Notes under the pieces: model-generated | Told to the model about the DNA's origin: nothing | The model's database searches: none | Seen by the model: only the letters and a program-made list of their open reading frames with translations | NCBI GenBank assembly: GCA_950097015.1 | Contig: CATNEN010000024.1 | Coordinates: forward strand, 4,340,001 to 4,404,000 | DNA length: 64,000 nucleotides | DNA from: Macrostomum hystrix | Taxonomy: Eukaryota > Animalia > Platyhelminthes | Direction: 5' to 3' | Shown here: piece after piece, positions 1,097 through 33,000 of the stretch | How the letters are laid out: every line of letters starts with the position of its first letter | How positions within the stretch are numbered: the first letter of the stretch is position 1 | Position numbers and translations under genes: made by a program

Positions 1097-4000
1097 TCGA
1101 AATTCGGCAACACCTACACGGAGAAAAACGTCCTGCTATCAGCTATTCACACTCACTCTGGGCCAGGCGGTTTCCATGGCTACACACTGTACGCGATTTC
1201 AACTCTGGGCTACATGGCCGACACGTTCGAGGCATTCTCAAACGGCATCGCCAGTGTAAGCATGTTTTCAGGCTTTCATTTGGATAGACTAGTGCTCCGT
1301 GCGTCCCCAGATCTCCATTTGTTGATGCACTTTTACTGTCAATACTCTCAGAGTTCAATGCTCTCAGAAAAAAATCAATCATCATCGCGCAGAGTATCGA
1401 GCAGGCCCACCTGTCCCTTCGGCCCACTCGTCTGTTCTACAACGAAGGCGAACTGACAAACAGCAGCGTTAGCCGCAGCCCCAGTTCCTACCTGTTAAAT
1501 CCGGCAGCTGAACGAGCCCACTACAATGGCGACGTTGACCGGACAATGCAGCTGGTGAAGCTGGTGGACAGCAGCACCGGGCAGCCGTTCGGTATGCTGA
1601 ACTGGTTCCCCGTGCACTGTACTAGCCTCAACAACACCAACCAGATGATCAGCGGCGACAACAAGGGCTGGGCAGCGCAGACTTTCGAACGCTACATGTC
1701 CAACGGAACCCAGCTGCCAGGTAAGCAGATAGTACTAATAATAATTGCAGGAGGGCTGTGGGCAATGGCACGTCATTTAATGACACTAGACGCGCAGCCA
1801 GCGAGGAGGCAATTCTGCCCATTTCGCTGACTCCTGAGCACACACGCACACTGATACTGTACGCAGGCATACGCTCACACAGGTGTGTACATCTGCCCTG
1901 ACTTTCTCATCGTCAGACAGTGTACACTCTCACTGTGCCTTGGATGTTGGCCCTCAAGGGCGTAAATTTCACAACAAGCCCCAAGCCTGCTCTTCGCGGC
2001 TGCGCCCCAAATGAATGTGGCCTCGCCGTGGAATCGAACTTAGGGACCTTGGTGCGAGAGGCAACGCGTTAACCGCTCTGCCACCGACCCACCCAGGCAA
2101 GCAGAAGTTTGTGGCTGCATTCTCCAACGCTAACGAAGGCGACGTCAGCCCAAACACGGCAGGGCCGCGATGCGTGGACACTGGAGAGCCGTGCGACATC
2201 ATCAGCAGCACCTGCGGCGGCCGGTCGCAGAAGTGCATCGCCTTCGGACCTGGACGAGACATGATTGACAGCGCCAGGATCATTGGGCTTCGGCAGTTTA
2301 ACAAGGCTTTGGCAAGTGGCCGCTATGGATATCGCTCGTATAGGGCCGAATCCACCCTCTAAGATCTTTCAGGCCTTGATTCATTTAGTTCGCGAAAGAA
2401 TTTAGGACCTTTTAGAGAAAAAAGCTGATAAAACTGGTCCAGGCATGCAATATCTACGATAATCTTGAGCGATCCTTCTATATTTTCCGGACAGCAAACA
2501 CCAGCTAAAAATAATGTTAGTGAGTCGAGCGTAAATCTACCGATCTAATTGGAGTTTGTAATGAGTTGTAATAAATTTGAACAAAAAACTGAGTTAAAAA
2601 TCAGTTTGTTGCCATTAGATTGAAGCATTTATACTAGTATTTATACTCATATTCCTCTAGTAACGTCTTAGAAGTCTTGACAATGAAATCATTCGAAACC
2701 AACGCTGCTGCCTATAGTTTGCGGAGCACAACTGCTAGCGTCGACCAGGTGAATTCAAACAACTCGGGCTGCTTGACCACGCGAGCTCGATGCTCTCGCC
2801 ATAGTTCGGCGCAGACGTTCGCTTTGTCAGCCACAGATCGCGATGCCTTGAGGCTTTCCAAGAACGAGGATTCCAAGGTGACGCGACAGGAGGCGGAGTA
2901 GTCCGCTGCGAACTTGCTCACGTCGCCATGGCGAAGGAAGTCTTCGTAGTAGGCTGAACGGTTCTGTGGAAGCTTCTCGACCCGCAGTAGCTCCAGACCC
3001 AGCGACTCGTACTGAGACGGCTCGCTCACCTCCTCCACCGACCTGAAGCATATTGGGACATTGAAGTCGATGAGCTCCTTTTGCTTGATGACGCCGCCTG
3101 CTAGCAGAGCCTCTGCAGCCTTATATATTTCGTCGAAAATGCTGCGAGACTTGCCCTGCGTTGATAGAAAATTTGCAGCCAGCACACCACCCTTGACGAG
3201 CTCCTTGGAGCGAGCCTCTAGGAAGCTCCTCCAGTCCTTGGCGGCCTGCTCTCTGAACGCTCGCTGCTCCTCGTCAGTGCCGAACATGGCGAAGCTGTGA
3301 TTAGCCAGCTTCACTGGCAGCATCGAGCACCAGTGCAGGCAGATGTTGGACATTCCGAGCTGCAGGCTGTTTGATGGTAACACCTGTGAGTGTGCGTCAT
3401 CACAAAATTGCGCGAATAATCAGTTTAAAAACCCAGACATTCCTAAGGTACGGCGTTACTGGTAAAAAGTTATCATGTGTCATGTGCAAAGAACTCATAG
3501 AATGAGTTGAGTCACTTTTGCTACACGATTGTGAAAACTTTCCTCACACCTTCGGCACTGACAAAAACAGTGGCAGCAGCGTCCTTATAGTTGAGTCTAT
3601 GGCAGTGTCAGTGCCCTACATCGGTGACAGTCCATGTTCACAGATTGGAAGGCCGCTAGCGACCACCCACCTGTTCGTAGAAGCTCATCCCTGAGGTGAC
3701 TGCGAACACTTCCGGGAGCTGGCGCAGGAACGATCGCTCATCTCCGTGCAGGAAGTTGAACAGCTCACTCCAGTGGTTGCTGGGCAAGTCGTTGAGCACA
3801 ACAAGCACCGAGCCGCAGCTCTCGGTGCCGTACTTGGCGCGCACCTGTCGGACGAGGTGAGAGATCGCGTCCGAGCTGTTCAGGCCGGTGCTGCAGCCAA
3901 AGTCAGCGATCACGAATGAGCTCGCAGACTTGCTGAGGTCCGATGAGTGCGCGGCCACCGCTGCGTCTAAGAATGGCTGAAAGAGAAGCAGAGCTCGCGA

Positions 4001-7000
4001 TTGATTTCGCGACTGAGCATTGTAGTCTGACTGCATCTTCAGGGTAGTAGACGCCATTTTTGCGTCCTGCGCTGCTGCCGCAATCGTGGCTGTTGTTGAG
4101 CGTTTGTTACAACAATGAGTCTCAGGTTTGTCCCGCTGCAGTGCGGTGCGTGTATATTATTGAGCTGATATCACATAATGCGAGCATTCGAAGCGCTCTC
4201 CGCTCCACTACGCTCGTATCTTGAAGCCTGTGTTTAGCCCTTTCATTTTAGTGTTCATGAAAATGAATGAGTATGCACTCATGTACACTGCTCGGTATCT
4301 GGTTAGCTTGTGTGTGGCTGTGCATGTGTGTTGTGACCATGCAAAACTTTTCTTTAACCTTTCAATTAGCAGGTGTTTTGTTTTGACTTTGAGTGTTTCG
4401 TAGCAATCCAACTGCAATTTTTCATAATAATAATAATAATAATTATTATTATTTCTTTTTTATTATTATTATTGCAGGAGGGCTGCGGGCAATGGCACAT
4501 CATTTAGTGACACTAGATTCGCAGCCAGCGAGGAGGCAATTCTGCCCATTTCGCTGACTCCTGAGCAAACACGCACTCAGATACTGAACGCAGGTATACA
4601 CTCACACGGGTGTGTACATCTGCCCTGACTTTCTCATCATCAGGCAGTGTACATTTGACTGTGCCTTGGAGGTTGGCCCTCAAGGGCGTAAATTGCACGA
4701 CACGCGGCTGCGCCCCAAATGAATGTGGCCTCGCCGTGGAATCGAACCTAGGGACCTTGGTGTGAGAGGCAAACGCGATAACCGCTCTGCCACCGCCCCC
4801 CAATGTGTCATCAATAAAACGATTACTACTTAGGGAGAAGAAGAATAGAATCACACCAAACCCAATTGGCCGGATGTACAGCCAGTTGCGCAACCGCAGT
4901 CCACGGGCTGTCAATGTACAACTGTTCAGTCCATGGACTGGTGGCCACCAGTGGCTCGTACCAGTGGGTACGAGCTTCTACATATTTTGCAGCTCAGAAA
5001 ACTGAATGAATTGGTGATTAACTGTGCCTTGCCAAGGACACAATTTATTTTCCCTGGCCTGTGACCTTTGTCCATGACCTCGGTCAGACATCGGAAAGTC
5101 CTCCCTGTATGGAGCAATCTCTCCTAGCATTATTTATTGGGTTTAGGACTTTATACGAGATACTGGTCCGAGGATTTTTGCGGATGAGGATAACGTTGAC
5201 CTTGCACTGCACAATATTTAGTCTTTGTTCGAGTCCGCTAGCCTCGAGGTGCCGGTGGACAGAATCAGCTACGTTCACCAGAATGTGGACATGACCAACT
5301 ACCAGCTGACTGTGAACGGCCAGCAGGTGCGCACCTGCAAGCCAGCCATGGGATTCAGCTTCGCGGCCGGCACCACGGATGGTCCGGGTGGTTTTGACTT
5401 CACCCAGGGCGACACCAGCGGCAATATGTTCTGGAACATTGTGCGCAGCGTGCTCAGCAAGCCCAACGCTGAGCAGGTGGAGTGTCAGAAGCCCAAGCCC
5501 ATACTTCTCAACACTGGCTACGTGAGTTTGGGCATGAACCTAATTGTGCTAAACTTTGCACCACGCTGATTGCCCCTAGCTTGCAAAATTTGAACCCCCC
5601 GCCATCAGATGACCTTCCCAACCGAATGGCAGCCAAGCGTTGTTGAGACGCAAATCGTTCGCATTGGTCCTCTGGCCCTTGTGGCCCTACCTGGCGAGTT
5701 CACCACAATGTCTGGGCGACGAGTGCGCCAAGCCGTGCAGTCGGCTTTAGAACAGAGCGGCATGCGCGACGCAACTGTGATTCTGGTTGGCCTCTCAAAC
5801 CTTTACTCGAGCTACATTGCCACTTATGAGGAGTATCAGGTTAGTTATATTTTGGCATAAAGAGAAAAAGTAAAAAATAAACGCCATGATAAGATTTTGG
5901 TACTAGCATTGTTGGCTGATATGGCCTCAGGGCAGTTGTTCTTTGATTATTGACATCTCTATACAATGTACTTTGCCTGCCATCTGTACACTATATTACA
6001 TGCTAATATGAATAGGCACAACGCTACGAAGCGGCTTCGACCATCTATGGACCGCACACACTGTCCGCCTACGTGGACCAGTTCAGCAAGCTGGCCAAAG
6101 CGCTGGCCACTAACTCGTCCGTGGACCCTGGCCCGCCGGTGCCCAACCTCTACGCCAAGATCAAGGGATATTCGTTTGTTACGCCCATCGTGTACGACGC
6201 TGTTGGAATCGGACGCAGCTTCGGCGAAGTGGTGACCCAACCAAATGCCGTCTATCACCCGGTGAGTTTTATACCGCCTAACAGGTTATCTGATGATCTT
6301 GATACTCAAAGGTGAATACAGGTTTATGTCTCGTAAATTGTACCTGACAGAGAGGGTCATTGCCACTAGTCAGAACTTTTAGATAAAGAATGTTGCTTGG
6401 TGTCTGGTAAAAACGCTGCAACTATTATTGGTTTTCAACTTCTATTTCAAACTAAGTAACTTCAATTTCGCCCGCGGGGAGGGGGATGCTCGTGTGTACC
6501 CGATGAGTAACTTCAATTTCGCCCGCGGGGAGGGGGATGCTCGTGTGTACCCGATGAGTAACTTCAATTTCGCCCGCGGGGAGGGGGATGCTCGTGTGTA
6601 CCCGATGAGTAACTTCGATTTCGCCCGCGGGGAGGGGGATGCTCGTGTGTACCCGATGAGTAACTTCGATTTCGCCCGCGGGGAGGGGGATGCTCGTGTG
6701 TACCCGATGAGTAACTTCGATTTCGCCCGCGGGGAGGGGGATGCTCGTGTGTACCCGATGAGTAACTTCAATTTCGCCCGCGGGGAGGGGGATGCTCGTG
6801 TGTACCCGATAAGTAACTTCAATTTCGCCCGCGGGGAGGGGGATGCTCGTGTGTACCCGATAAGTAACTTCAATTTCGCCCGCGGGGAGGGGGATGCTCG
6901 TGTGTACCCGATGAGTAACTTCGATTTCGCCCGCGAGACCGCGGCCTGCCCAGGTTAGAGTAAATCAATTTCACAAAAAGTAAGCTTCTATTTCGTCTTG

Positions 7001-8749
7001 CATTTTTTTCATCCGGCTTTAAACATTAATATAGGCCATAATGGGCCTGTACTTTCAATATATATTTTTGACGCATCAGGCAAGACACCAAATTGGGAGA
7101 CAGACAACAAAAAGAGCTCTTATTGTCGCTCCAATAAGATTGGAGCTTCAAGAGCGGCTGGATGTGAAAGTGTCGGCGCTATCCGATTAGCTGATTTTTT
7201 TTTTTGATTCTGTGCTATAGTGTCATAAATTCAAAAGGCTCATAAATCACTCGACACTCGACAGAATCAAGATATTATAATTGCATTGCGGCGGAGTCGG
7301 TGGCGGCGTCGGCGTCGGCGTCGGCGAAGATCAAAGGCAAGGACAAAGTCCGTATTTCATAGAGCAGACGCAAACACAAATCGCTGTGCTGAAGAGACGA
7401 AATAGAAGTTACTTTTTGTGAAATTGATTTACTCTAACTGGGCAGGCCGGTCTCGCTGGCGAAATTGAAGTAACTAACGCCAGCCAGAGAGCCACCAGGC
7501 GGAGCGGTTAACGCCTTTGCCTCTCGCACCAAGGTTTCTGAGTTCGATTCCACGGCGAGGCCATATTAAATTGGGGCGCAGCCGCAGAGAGAAGGCTTGG
7601 GGGCTTGTCGTGCAATTTACGCCCTTGAGGGCCAACCTCCAAGGGACAGTGAGAGTGTACACTGCCTGACGATGAGAAAGCCAGGGCAGATGTACACACT
7701 TGTGTGAGCGTGTACCTGCGTACATTATCTGTGCGTTTGTGCTGCAGGTCTAGTATCAGCAAACGGTGTGTCATTGCCCGCAGCCCTCCTGCAAATAATT
7801 ATTATCAGTATTGAACAAGTCTTGTCACTCAACCGAGCGGGTCCGTTGTGTACATAAACACAATAAACTTCTCGAACCTCCGCAGGGGGACACAGTGTCC
7901 GCCAGCTTCAGGACTGGCCATCCGCGCAACAACATGATGCTTGGTGGCAGCTTCCTGATGGTGCAGCGCAAGACTTCCACAGGAGACTGGGAGGATGTTT
8001 GCAATGACGCCTGCGTGGAGACCAGGTGAGGGAGATATCAGACTTGAAGTTCTTGATGTCCGTCTGTGTTTTCATTTACTAATTTTTTTGTACATTTTCT
8101 TATTACGAGTATTTTGATAATTGATTACAACCTGCCCCAATAGGACCAGACGGGTACAGCCGCAGCTATTGCGTGGCGCATCTGCGTTACAGCTGTTCAG
8201 TCCGTGGACTGTGGGGACGCCACTCCCCAATCAACCCAACTAATGCTGGTACCCACTGAACAGCGGGGTGAACGGAAGTGATGCAGAGAGTTATGTGTCA
8301 TGCTAATTGTTCCAGTGGAGTCGGAAATCGAAACCTCGACCTTTAACACTCTAACCGCCAGGCTACAACCCCTGCTGGCGCTAGCGGAAAAAATTTTCTT
8401 AGCTTAATGCAAAATACGTTTTCCCTAAATCGCTCATTTCTACCACCTGAAATTCTGTATGCAAAATTGTTAATGCCGAGCACACCTGCCCCGCAGATTC
8501 CGCTGGGAGAGAACCAACGCCCTGCTGGGTTACAGCCTGGCCCACATGGCCTGGGACATTCCCAGTTGTGCCAGGCCGGGCAGCTACCGCCTGGTCCACA
8601 CCGGCTGGTTCAAACCGGTTCTGGTGTGGCAGAAGCCGCGCCAGTTCAGCGGCGCAACCAGCGAGTTTCGAGTCGAAAGTGGCGCAAAGCGACGCACCTG
8701 CAGCGATCGTGACGTCATCGATGAGCAGGTTGGCGCCGGGTGCCGTTAA
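1097..8749 (+). CDS. ASAH2: Neutral/alkaline non-lysosomal ceramidase (5'-partial; exons 1097-1255, 1393-1720, 2097-2311, 5222-5521, 5609-5839, 6016-6261, 7886-8025, 8497-8749)
   Basis: Spliced translation gives the family motifs SAIHTHSGPGG, SRSPSSYLLNP, NWFPVHCTSLNNTN, GDNKG, AAFSNANEGDVSPN, CKPAMGFSFAAGTTDGPG, PGEFTTMSGRR, YIATYEEYQAQRYEAASTIYGPHTL and GHPRNN. All seven joins keep frame. Donors are GT except one GC donor at 2312. Confidence 0.95.
1730..2092 (-). mobile_element. tRNA-derived SINE family 1, full-length copy filling ceramidase intron 1721-2096
   Basis: On the minus strand: A box TGGCAGAGCGG, B-box-like AAGTTCGATTCC, shared body and (ATT)n-like tail. Flanked by a 13-bp duplication at 1717-1729 and 2093-2105. 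Confidence 0.88.
2712..4057 (-). CDS. SABATH-family SAM-dependent carboxyl methyltransferase (Methyltransf_7-like), 352 aa, 2 exons (4057-3671, 3383-2712), nested antisense in a ceramidase intron
   Basis: Motifs IADFGCSTGLNS, NDLPSNHW, GMSFYEQVLPSNSL, SNICLHWCS and DWRSFLEARSKELVKGG match SABATH motifs (IADLGCSxGxN, NDLPxNDF, GSFY..LFP, SLHWLS, DFxxFLxxRxxELxxGG). Phase-0 intron CAG|GTGGGT...CTCACAG|GTG. ORF is intact. Confidence 0.88.
4425..4801 (-). mobile_element. SINE family 1 copy
   Basis: Near-identical to 1730-2092, with B box GGTTCGATTCC on the minus strand and a long (AAT/ATT)n tail at 4425-4473. Confidence 0.88.
4880..5060 (-). mobile_element. SINE family 2 (CORE-like) fragment
   Basis: Minus strand TTGTGTCCTTGGCAAGGCAC..., plus the family palindrome CAGTCCATGGACTG. 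Confidence 0.6.
6455..6935. repeat. 51-bp minisatellite, 9 units plus a partial
   Basis: Unit AGTAACTTCAATTTCGCCCGCGGGGAGGGGGATGCTCGTGTGTACCCGATG, starting at 6455, 6506 ... 6914. Confidence 0.97.
6455..7475. mobile_element. Non-autonomous DNA transposon-like element with about 85-bp TIRs (6914-6999 / 7393-7475) and a tandemly amplified left end
   Basis: 6914-6999 is the near-perfect reverse complement of 7393-7475 (AGT[A/T]ACTTC[A/G]ATTTCGCC..GCGAGACC..GGCCTGCCCAG.TTAGAGTAAATCAATTTCACAAAAAGTAA.CTTCTATTTCGTC). No coding capacity. Confidence 0.72.
7495..7806 (+). mobile_element. SINE family 1 copy (short internal deletion)
   Basis: GGCGGAGCGG...GAGTTCGATTCC head, shared body, TGCAAATAATTATTAT tail. 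Confidence 0.85.
8150..8372 (-). mobile_element. SINE family 2 copy
   Basis: Minus strand GTTGTAGCCTGGCGGTTAG...GTTTCGATTTCC head, CACCCCGCTGTTCAGTGGGTACC, CAGTCCACGGACTGAACAGC and CAATAGCTGCGGCTGT, homologous to 63515-63735. Confidence 0.75.
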
Positions 8750-30000: not shown

Positions 30001-33000
30001 GCAGGCCGGTGCTCAGTCGTTACGGCCCATTCATTCTGCAGCTCTACCTCATCGCTGACAATGGGTTTGTGAGTATAACATCTAGAATGTTTTATGTTAT
30101 TATAACATATAACATACATTATAACATAACCTGACACTCAAGGTCTTGAGGGAGAACCATAGACATTACTCAAGGTCTTGAGGGAGAACCATAGACATTA
30201 CTCAAGGTCTTGAGGGAGAACCATAGACATTACTCAAGGTCTTGAGGGAGAACCATCGACTTTAGGCCATGTCATGAGATGTTTCCATAGACATTACTCA
30301 AGGTCATTGGGGTGTACGATAGACATTAGGCCACGTCATGAGGGTGTACCAAAAACATTAGTCAAGATCATGGAGGTGTACCATAGGCATTAGGCGAGGC
30401 AATCGAATAGAGTAAAATGGACAAGATGGTTGTTAAGATTGCAAACAGTTCTGCTTAGTTACAGCTCGACATTCTAATGTTGTGCCAGATGTAATGTAAA
30501 TTAAGCTCAACGTTGACTCGTTTGACCCACCCTGGCTCCTTTTTTGTCCGCGTAAGGTTTTGTAATGTGATGAATAATTCATTACAGGCTCATTCGAATT
30601 CACTCGTACATTTTTTCTCAATGCGTAAAGTTTAGGGTTATCTTGCATGCCATCGGGGTAACCATGGCAACTAGCGGGCCTTAGCAACGATTAGCATTTC
30701 CGATGTGAAAAAACTTCACTCAATTAAGGTCCAAAGAATAACTTAATTAGAGTAATAGGCCAGCTGCTCACTTCTCATTGCAGTACAAAATTCACTCCTC
30801 GAGCTCATCGGCTGTGATTGACGCCGCACAGAGCATTATTGGCATCGTCAACAATGTGAGTATTGCGTCTAACAGGTGACACCCATGTCTAACAGGTTGA
30901 CACCCATGTCTAACAGGTTGACACCCATGTCTAACAGGTTGACACCCATGTCTAACAGGTTGACACCCATGTCTAACAGGTTGACACCCATGTCTAACAG
31001 GTTGACACCCATGTCTAACAGGTTGACAACTATATCTAATAGGGTGACACCAATGTGCAACAGGTGACACCCATAACTAACAGGTGATACAAATGTCCTA
31101 CAGGTTGACACGGGGGTGGGTGGCAGAGCGGTTAACGCGTTTGCCTCTCGCACCAAGGTCCCTGAGCTCGATTCCGCGGCGAGGCCACATTTATTTGGGG
31201 CGCAGCCGCGGAGTGAAGGCTTGGGGGCGGGCTTGCAATTTACGCCCTTGAGGGTCAACCTCCAAGGCACAGTGAGAGTGTACACTGCCTGACGATGAGA
31301 AAGTCAGGGCACATGTACACACCTGTGTTGCCTCCTTGCTGGCTGCGAGTCTAGTGTCACTAAATTATGTGCCATTGCACGCAGCCCACCTGCAATTATT
31401 TATTTTATTGTCACGCTGTAAAAAATTCCACATAAAAGATTCTGAATATATAAAACTGCACTTTGTTTTTCGCACTCTACTGAAAGCAGTATAAGAGGCA
31501 TCTGTTCGCAATTTCTGCAGATGTTTCGCCGCTTCGACGTTCATATAGTAGTCAGCGCGCTGGAAATTCACACCAGAACAATTTCTGGCTTCGATTTCGC
31601 AAATCGGACCAATCAGAATCCGTCCTTCACGCTGGACTTGGTGAAGAATTATTCGGAGAGGATTAGAAATGAAGTGGAGTACGACTGTGTGCACCTGCTT
31701 AAGTGAGCTGAGTTGGGTAGCCCTGAGTGTTCACTGTCTATTTGCAGGACTACTGCCGATAGCACATTGTCTTCTACAAAAGAGTCCTATCTACCAGACT
31801 CTCTTATCCAAATTACTCCTTCAACCAGACTCTCTTATCGGCAATGCCTTAAAAACCTACCAGACTCTTTGTCTCGAGTAGAATCTCATCTACTAGACAC
31901 TTCTGTCGTGTATAAAATTACAAGCCAAAACCTTTTATCAACTTAAACTTCAGTGGCAGAGAATACTACGGCACCACAAGTGGCCTTGCCTCTGTGAAAT
32001 CCATGTGCGTCAGGAAAGAGTGCGCTGGCCTCAGCGTTGTAAGTAACTAACCAATTGGCTTCAAACTGAAGACACTAGTCCCAATTTTGGCATGAATGGG
32101 GAGACCAAACCCGGTCTTTCAATTCCTCTCTAGATTCCCCAGTCTCCCTATTTTTGATCCCCAGTGTCCCTAACCTCGGTTCCCCAGCCTCCCTAATCTC
32201 GGTTCCCCAGCCTCCCTAATCTCGGTTCCCCAGCCTCCCTAATCTCGGTTCCCCAGCCTCCCTAATCTCGGTTCCCCAGCCTCCCTAATCTCGGTTCCCC
32301 AGCCTCTCTAATCTCGGTTCCCCAGCTTCCCTAATCTCGATTCCCCAGCCTCCCTAATCTCGGTTCCCCAGCCTCCCTAATCTCGGTTCCCCAGCCTCCC
32401 TAATCTCGGTTCCCCAGCCTCCCTAATCTCGGTTCCCCAGCCTCCCTAATCTCGGTTCCCCAGCCTCCCTAATCTCGGTTCCCCAGCCTCCCTAATCTCG
32501 GTTCCCCAGCCTCCCTAATCTCGGTTCCCCAGCCTCCCTAATATCGGTTCCCCAGCCTCCCTAATCTCGGTTCCCCAGCCTCCCTAATCTCGGTTCCCCA
32601 GCCTCCCTAATATCGGTTCCCCAGCCTCCCTAATCTCGGTTCCCCAGTCTCCCTAATCCCTTGCAACTCGAATATCGCCGACTGCCCTCCACAGTCTCGC
32701 CAGTCCAGCGGCATATTCGCCACCACCGGCCTGGTGATGGCGCACGAGCTGGCCCACAACCTGGGCGTCGATCACGACGACGCATACCAAGGCCGGGCCT
32801 GCGACTGCCCCTCCTCAGCCTGCGTGATGAGCCCCAACGCGCGGCCTGTCAGCGACTGGCGCAACATCAGCTGGACGGCCTGCTCAGCCGACGCCCTGCT
32901 GAACTTCCTGGATTCCGGCTTCCGTCACTGCCTGCTGATGCCGCGACCGGAGGCCGACAATTGGGGCGAGCTTCTCCTGCCAGTAGCCGGGGTTTGGGCA

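Follow-up and report, generated by a model that had tools for sequence, protein, structure and literature searches.

A SINE insertion in a coding exon is the very probable origin of a spliceosomal intron in a flatworm ceramidase gene

Introduction

The origin of new spliceosomal introns is a long-standing question, and to our knowledge animals offer few clear recent gains whose mechanism can be seen. Several described systems come close to the case presented here. In rice, the catalase A gene (CatA) was reported in 1998 to carry a SINE-made intron in its coding region, as summarized in PMC2394776 and cited in PMC11282704. Human Alu elements have been intronized as well, giving alternative introns in 3′UTRs (Sela et al. 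2007, PMC2394776) whose splice sites were activated by mutations inside the Alu or in old exon sequence (PMC2394776). In Rogers' tandem-duplication model, duplications that contain AGGT yield introns (Zhuo et al. 2007, as cited in PMC2394776). Finally, introners are mostly DNA transposons with TIRs, non-LTR retroelements making up ~5% of the classified families in a survey that counts 201 introner species (Gozashti et al. 2025, PMC12130899), and the co-option of a target-site duplication (TSD) for a splice site has been described for them (PMC11282704).

Here we describe an intron in a neutral ceramidase gene within a 64-kb stretch of DNA from the flatworm Macrostomum hystrix (the window, to which all coordinates given without a locus name refer), where a SINE inserted into a coding exon very probably became a spliced intron, the TSD supplying both its GT and its AG. 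This intron belongs among the known introns made by insertion of transposable elements (TEs), and what sets it apart is its position in animal coding sequence, the derivation of both splice sites from the TSD and how complete the evidence is; every step is visible, from the element and its TSD to the intronless site in relatives and the exact join in the mRNA. As in rice CatA, as far as the summaries of that gene go, a single SINE in a coding exon gave a spliced intron that is absent from related genes; here the host is a flatworm rather than a plant, both splice sites lie in the TSD and the element is antisense. Unlike the Alu introns, the ceramidase intron lies in coding sequence, its removal is needed for the reading frame and both of its sites come from the TSD.

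The resemblance to introners extends to the conversion of a TE into an intron, the co-option of a TSD and the exact restoration of the frame (Huff et al. 2016; Gozashti et al. 2022, PMC9860276; Gozashti et al. 2025, PMC12130899). Introners, however, are defined in these sources by large sets of similar introns spread over unrelated genes, and most introners carry one splice site themselves, whereas the ceramidase SINE is one verified case. Like Rogers' model, as it is outlined in PMC2394776, the ceramidase locus has a duplicated exonic AG|GT segment that sets both ends of the intron, and the original message is regained by splicing; unlike that model, the duplication is a 13-bp TSD of retroposition and the body of the intron is foreign (a SINE) rather than duplicated exon. 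SINEs, flatworms and Macrostomum go unmentioned in the main text of both introner surveys (PMC9860276, PMC12130899), and full-text literature searches for intron gain in Macrostomum, or for a comparable flatworm case, found nothing.

Results and discussion

The intron consists of a SINE and parts of its target-site duplication

Most of the neutral ceramidase gene lies on the + strand within the first 8.7 kb of the window. The features discussed below are as follows.

1079-1255, 1393-1720, 2097-2311, 5222-5521, 5609-5839, ~6016-6255, ~7883-8029 and ~8495-8746, + strand: ceramidase exons, from translation and alignment
1393..1720, + strand: upstream half of what was very probably a single exon (SIEQAH...TQLP and the first base of the Gly codon), from translation; an RNA piece covers 1393-1716 directly after 1078-1255
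1717-1729, + strand: left TSD copy, CCAG|GTAAGCAGA, which ends the exon and forms the 5′ splice site CAG|GTAAGC
1721-2096, + strand: very probably new spliceosomal intron, 376 nt, GT..AG, phase 1 within a Gly codon
1730-2092, − strand: full-length SINE labelled tRNA-derived, 363 nt, antisense to the gene, with its tail at the 5′ end of the intron and its head at the 3′ end
2068-2073, + strand: candidate branch point GTTAAC (yUnAy), with A2072 24 nt before the 3′ splice site; role proposed from the sequence
2073-2094, + strand: C-rich putative pyrimidine tract in the antisense SINE head, 16/22 pyrimidines (73%)
2093-2105, + strand: right TSD copy, CCAG|GCAAGCAGA, giving the AG of the 3′ splice site and the first 9 exon bases
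2097..2311, + strand: downstream half of the same probable former exon (GC AAG CAG ... NKAL), from translation; an RNA piece covers 2093-2311
2312..5221, + strand: neighbouring intron with a GC donor (TTG|GCAAGT ... TTTAG|TCT); an RNA piece ends at 2311, and a single junction keeps the frame, NKAL|SLF, which M. lignano shares
2712-4057, − strand: SABATH-type (Pfam Methyltransf_7) gene, nested antisense in intron 2312-5221; the position is also kept in M. lignano (L003 8859-10560, L004 8062-9763)

The original prediction for this locus held that the 376-nt intron is made up of 9 nt, an antisense SINE (1730-2092) and CCAG, and this was borne out both by direct reading and by alignment of the SINE: the intron runs from 9 nt of TSD through the element to 4 nt of TSD (CCAG) and contains nothing else. 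The predicted 13-mer repeat was likewise recovered, as the best direct repeat within 1600-2220. Its two copies, CCAGGTAAGCAGA (1717-1729) and CCAGGCAAGCAGA (2093-2105), abut the head and the tail of the SINE, start 376 nt apart and are identical at 12 of 13 positions by both sequence reading and repeat search. By our own calculation, the chance that two 13-mers agree with no more than one mismatch is 40/4^13 = 6e-7 at fixed positions, or ~7e-5 if a slip of up to 5 nt is allowed at each end.

The sole mismatch, a T/C difference between 1722 and 2098, falls on the +2 base of the donor (T in the left copy, C in the right) and, in the right copy, on a third codon position, where it is synonymous as had been claimed (GGT and GGC both encode Gly). 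Both splice dinucleotides lie inside the TSD copies, with the GT donor at 1721-1722 in the left copy and the AG acceptor at 2095-2096 in the right one, and the mRNA contigs described below use them, which agrees with the proposed origin of the splice sites. The C-rich tract that had been ascribed to the antisense SINE head is present and may serve as a pyrimidine tract; direct reading places an AG-free zone of 34 nt before the acceptor (2061 to 2094), and the candidate branch point is the antisense of the A-box region of the SINE. The prediction that splicing is required also stood, in that 376 is not a multiple of 3 and the unspliced reading stops at 1828-1830 (ORF 1546..1830). Joining 1720 to 2097 yields ...TQLPGKQKFVAAF....

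The element belongs to an abundant SINE family

A blastn search of the window found ~9 copies or fragments of the SINE at 77-91% identity, to which 363 of the 376 intron nucleotides align. An alignment of five copies revealed a common head, an (AAT/ATT)n tail and lengths of ~335-363 nt, which fits a short, non-coding and highly repeated SINE with variable TSDs and a simple-repeat tail; the copy in the ceramidase gene is ~4.6% diverged from the local majority consensus. The head contains A-box-like (TGGCAGAGCGG) and B-box-like (GGTTCGATTCC) pol III motifs, and it is these motifs to which the label tRNA-derived refers, since ARAGORN and Rfam (at gathering and E-value thresholds) called neither a tRNA nor any other RNA family within the SINE. 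The summed contig depth of the DNA run X9 over the SINE (1714-2121) reaches up to 2-3 million, compared with ~80 in the single-copy flanks. Together with the density of copies in the window, this is consistent with a copy number in the genome of the order of 10^4, a rough figure given that depth is not a copy number.

In M. lignano, loci L001-L004 contain matches to the core of the SINE only (~111-317; for example at L002 4022-4231 and 9831-9968), at 73-82% identity and with the tRNA-like head unmatched. Sequence similarity of this kind suggests a SINE superfamily in which a common core may be combined with different heads in the M. hystrix window and in M. lignano. Adjoining another SINE copy in the window is a tandem repeat (30792-31070) that is open in several frames, has a 7-aa unit (CQPVRHG) and is not coding-like.

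The site is continuous in M. lignano

The closest public proteins are the neutral ceramidases of M. lignano (Mlig021249), with 80% identity over the exons of the window, and an older paralogue, Mlig016966, shows 66% identity. We examined four M. lignano loci, of which L001 is the older paralogue and L002, L003 and L004 are ceramidase homeologues. In all three homeologues, the region corresponding to the two half-exons is a single continuous exon of 543 nt (L002 6485-7027, L003 7217-7759, L004 7039-7581) reading CTGCCCGGCAAGCAGAAGTTTGT, with 100% tblastn identity over aa 160-340 in each. The half-exons of the window also total 543 nt and align to this exon without indels, the upstream one (1393-1720) being colinear with aa 160-268. 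The empty site reads CTG CCC GGC AAG CAG AAG TTT (LPGKQKF), and removal of the SINE and one TSD copy from the window restores the same LPGKQKF, as had been anticipated. The paralogue L001 is continuous at this site as well, so that the comparison with paralogues and related species that the original prediction had proposed finds the site intronless in three homeologues and one paralogue. All remaining intron positions are common to the window and the M. lignano homeologues, and over M. lignano aa 97-730 the alignment of all later exons shows introns at identical positions.

At four-fold sites, 51% of positions differ from M. lignano (JC distance ~0.87), whereas only 18/181 amino acids differ across the pair of half-exons, indicating that the ceramidase coding sequence is under constraint. 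Searches with a profile, with the full-length M. lignano query and with the single exon found no relative closer than M. lignano. The empty-site comparison is thus with one distant relative, and it bounds the date of the insertion and the ancestral T/C state loosely.

The older paralogue has an intron of its own, a private 90-nt GT-AG intron (L001 ~5104-5193) located after GWAAQ, 14 codons upstream of the site, without an obvious repeat or TSD; it is absent in the orthologue group and in Priapulus.

An ancient intron lies 5 nt away, in a different phase

The original prediction named an outgroup intron at exactly this phase-1 position as the observation that would speak against a new intron. 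What we found in outgroups is a phase-0 intron after the Lys codon, both in Priapulus caudatus (L005 3801/4127; PGK|GKF) and in Schistosoma turkestanicum (L006 ~8099; LGK|GPF). It is the nearest outgroup intron. The distance from the phase-1 site is 5 nt in the downstream direction, and 5/5 of the examined Macrostomum gene copies lack it. Because the nearest ancient intron is offset by 5 nt, is in phase 0 and is absent in Macrostomum, the SINE intron occupies a new position rather than a retained one. The phase, the 5-nt offset and the absence in all Macrostomum copies speak against both retention of the ancient PGK|GKF intron and sliding from it, and we rejected these readings. By this comparison of gene structures, the Macrostomum lineage lost the ancient intron, whose position is 5 nt away from that of the new SINE intron.

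The intron is spliced, and the SINE is present in genomic DNA

Contigs from three sequencing runs were placed on the window: the RNA run X5, which shares its organism code with the best DNA runs; the RNA run X1, from another study and with another organism code; and the DNA run X9, which is possibly the assembly's own sample. X5 can be recognized as RNA by its zero depth in ordinary introns. An X5 contig of 2578 nt is placed on 1078-1255, 1393-1716 and 2093-2311 with 0 mismatches over 721 nt, and one of 386 nt from X1 aligns to 1516-1716 and 2093-2277, likewise without a mismatch. Since CCAG flanks both sides, a join of 1716 to 2093 is equivalent to one of 1720 to 2097, and only the latter register gives GT..AG. 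The spliced join is not a shortcut of the assembly, because the mismatched 13-nt repeat is far shorter than the 31-letter words. The RNA check proposed for the 1720/2097 junction was therefore positive at the contig level in two studies.

For the DNA, run X9 gave contigs of 3409 and 2427 nt, which span 1000-1758 at a depth of 76.5 and 2065-2500 at a depth of 80.4 and pass from the unique flanks across both SINE junctions with 0 mismatches and no break at 1721 or 2093. No SINE-free allele was seen in X9, as judged by contig continuity, the listed joints being the 15 best-supported of 285; such an allele at appreciable frequency should break the contigs at 1721/2093, so the unbroken contigs count against it. 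This evidence is at the level of assembled contigs rather than reads, and the interior of the SINE is swamped by other copies.

Origin of the intron

The locus thus presents the element, its TSD, the empty site in relatives, the mRNA junction and the filled DNA site, and we consider it very probable that a SINE inserted into the coding exon became the spliced intron. Under the mechanism that we propose, a ~363-nt, putatively tRNA-derived SINE would have retrotransposed in antisense orientation into the middle of the 543-nt ceramidase exon after the split from M. lignano, duplicating 13 bp of exon (CCAGG[C/T]AAGCAGA) that contain AG|GY. The left copy of the duplication offers a donor close to consensus (CAG|GTAAGC), and the right copy has the acceptor AG with a G after it, while the antisense SINE head upstream of this AG may contribute the branch-point-like TTAAC, the C-rich tract and the AG-free zone. 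The spliceosome removes the SINE and one TSD copy (376 nt), which returns exactly the pre-insertion coding sequence, LPGKQKF. As splicing restores the pre-insertion coding sequence, the insertion would have been tolerated and left a new, constitutive-looking intron.

The most serious alternative is that the copy carrying the SINE is dead or a null allele and that the seemingly spliced RNA derives from a SINE-free allele or from a second copy with the same exon. The joined sequence is indeed identical to an empty site with GGC, the RNA and DNA runs stem from different studies, and the three near-identical homeologues in M. lignano make extra copies conceivable in the genus. Against this stand the DNA contigs (organism C), which cross both junctions, stop only inside the SINE and show no branch at 1721/2093, and whose depth equals that of the single-copy flanks; the RNA contigs, moreover, agree with the window at all of their 721 and 386 placed nucleotides, the donor is close to consensus, and the ceramidase gene is otherwise intact and constrained. 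We therefore regard a null allele as unlikely.

It is even less likely that an old intron was hit by a SINE at a later time and that the 13-bp repeat is a coincidence of splice consensus. The PGK|GKF intron of Priapulus and Schistosoma lies very near, but it sits 5 nt further downstream, has phase 0 and is lacking from the five examined Macrostomum gene copies, and such a history would demand two independent losses in M. lignano. Nor does the window intron contain sequence beyond the SINE and its TSD, and as nothing is left when these are subtracted, there is no room for an earlier functional intron; seven of the matching bases (AAGCAGA) lie outside the splice consensus, with a chance of ~6e-5. 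A misplacement of the SINE into the exon during assembly has to be considered for an element this abundant, with a summed depth ~10^4 times that of the flanks, but short-read DNA contigs lead from unique sequence into the SINE at both of its ends without a mismatch, and a clean TSD that includes a substitution is unlike the product of a misjoin, making an artefact the most improbable of these explanations.

Could the SINE act as an introner?

If this origin is correct, an ordinary retro-SINE without built-in splice sites suffices to make an intron, both sites coming from a protosplice motif (AG|GY) within the duplicated target sequence, with the antisense tRNA-like head as the putative source of the branch point and pyrimidine tract. 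This predicts a simple, testable rule on which exon insertions persist as introns: any antisense insertion with AG|GY in its TSD could be excised exactly, and intron births could repeat. Given ~10^4 copies, and AG|GY in ~1/10 of TSDs by our own estimate, recurrent introns of this kind are plausible. Whether the family is a true retroposon introner of the Macrostomum genome, repeatedly turning exon insertions into introns, is a more demanding proposition that we advance tentatively and would lean slightly against. The ceramidase intron is the one verified SINE-made intron, and the 64-kb window contains no second example, 0/8 of the other copies or fragments being bounded by coding sequence. The only copy with open frames on both sides (31114-31404) was rejected, its flanks being a tandem repeat and not exon. 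If the introner reading is true, bilaterian animals would have in this SINE their first introner family of the SINE type, and one whose host genus includes a laboratory model; should further cases hold in the genome, Macrostomum would become an experimentally tractable animal system for intron gain.

A plausible GC-AG birth, and the neighbouring intron

The codon interrupted by the intron reads GGC in M. lignano and in the right TSD copy, and GGT in the left copy. Because M. lignano has GGC and the next ceramidase intron (2312-5221) uses a GC donor, it is plausible that the new intron was born as GC-AG and that its donor changed from C to T at a later point. The tolerance of GC donors in this genome, which the original prediction had assumed, has a concrete example in that neighbouring intron, which starts with GCAAGT; all three M. 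lignano homeologues have a GT donor (TTG|GTAGGT) at the matching intron. With 51% of four-fold sites differing, synonymous positions are saturated, and M. lignano consequently does not fix the polarity of the T/C difference.

The antisense methyltransferase gene inside intron 2312-5221 keeps its nested position in M. lignano, and the nesting is therefore older than the split between the two species; this synteny accords with the protein matches to M. lignano. A further ceramidase intron contains a tandem repeat (6428-6958) with a 14-aa unit, ...SNFNFARGEGDARVYPM..., which is open in several frames and not coding-like.
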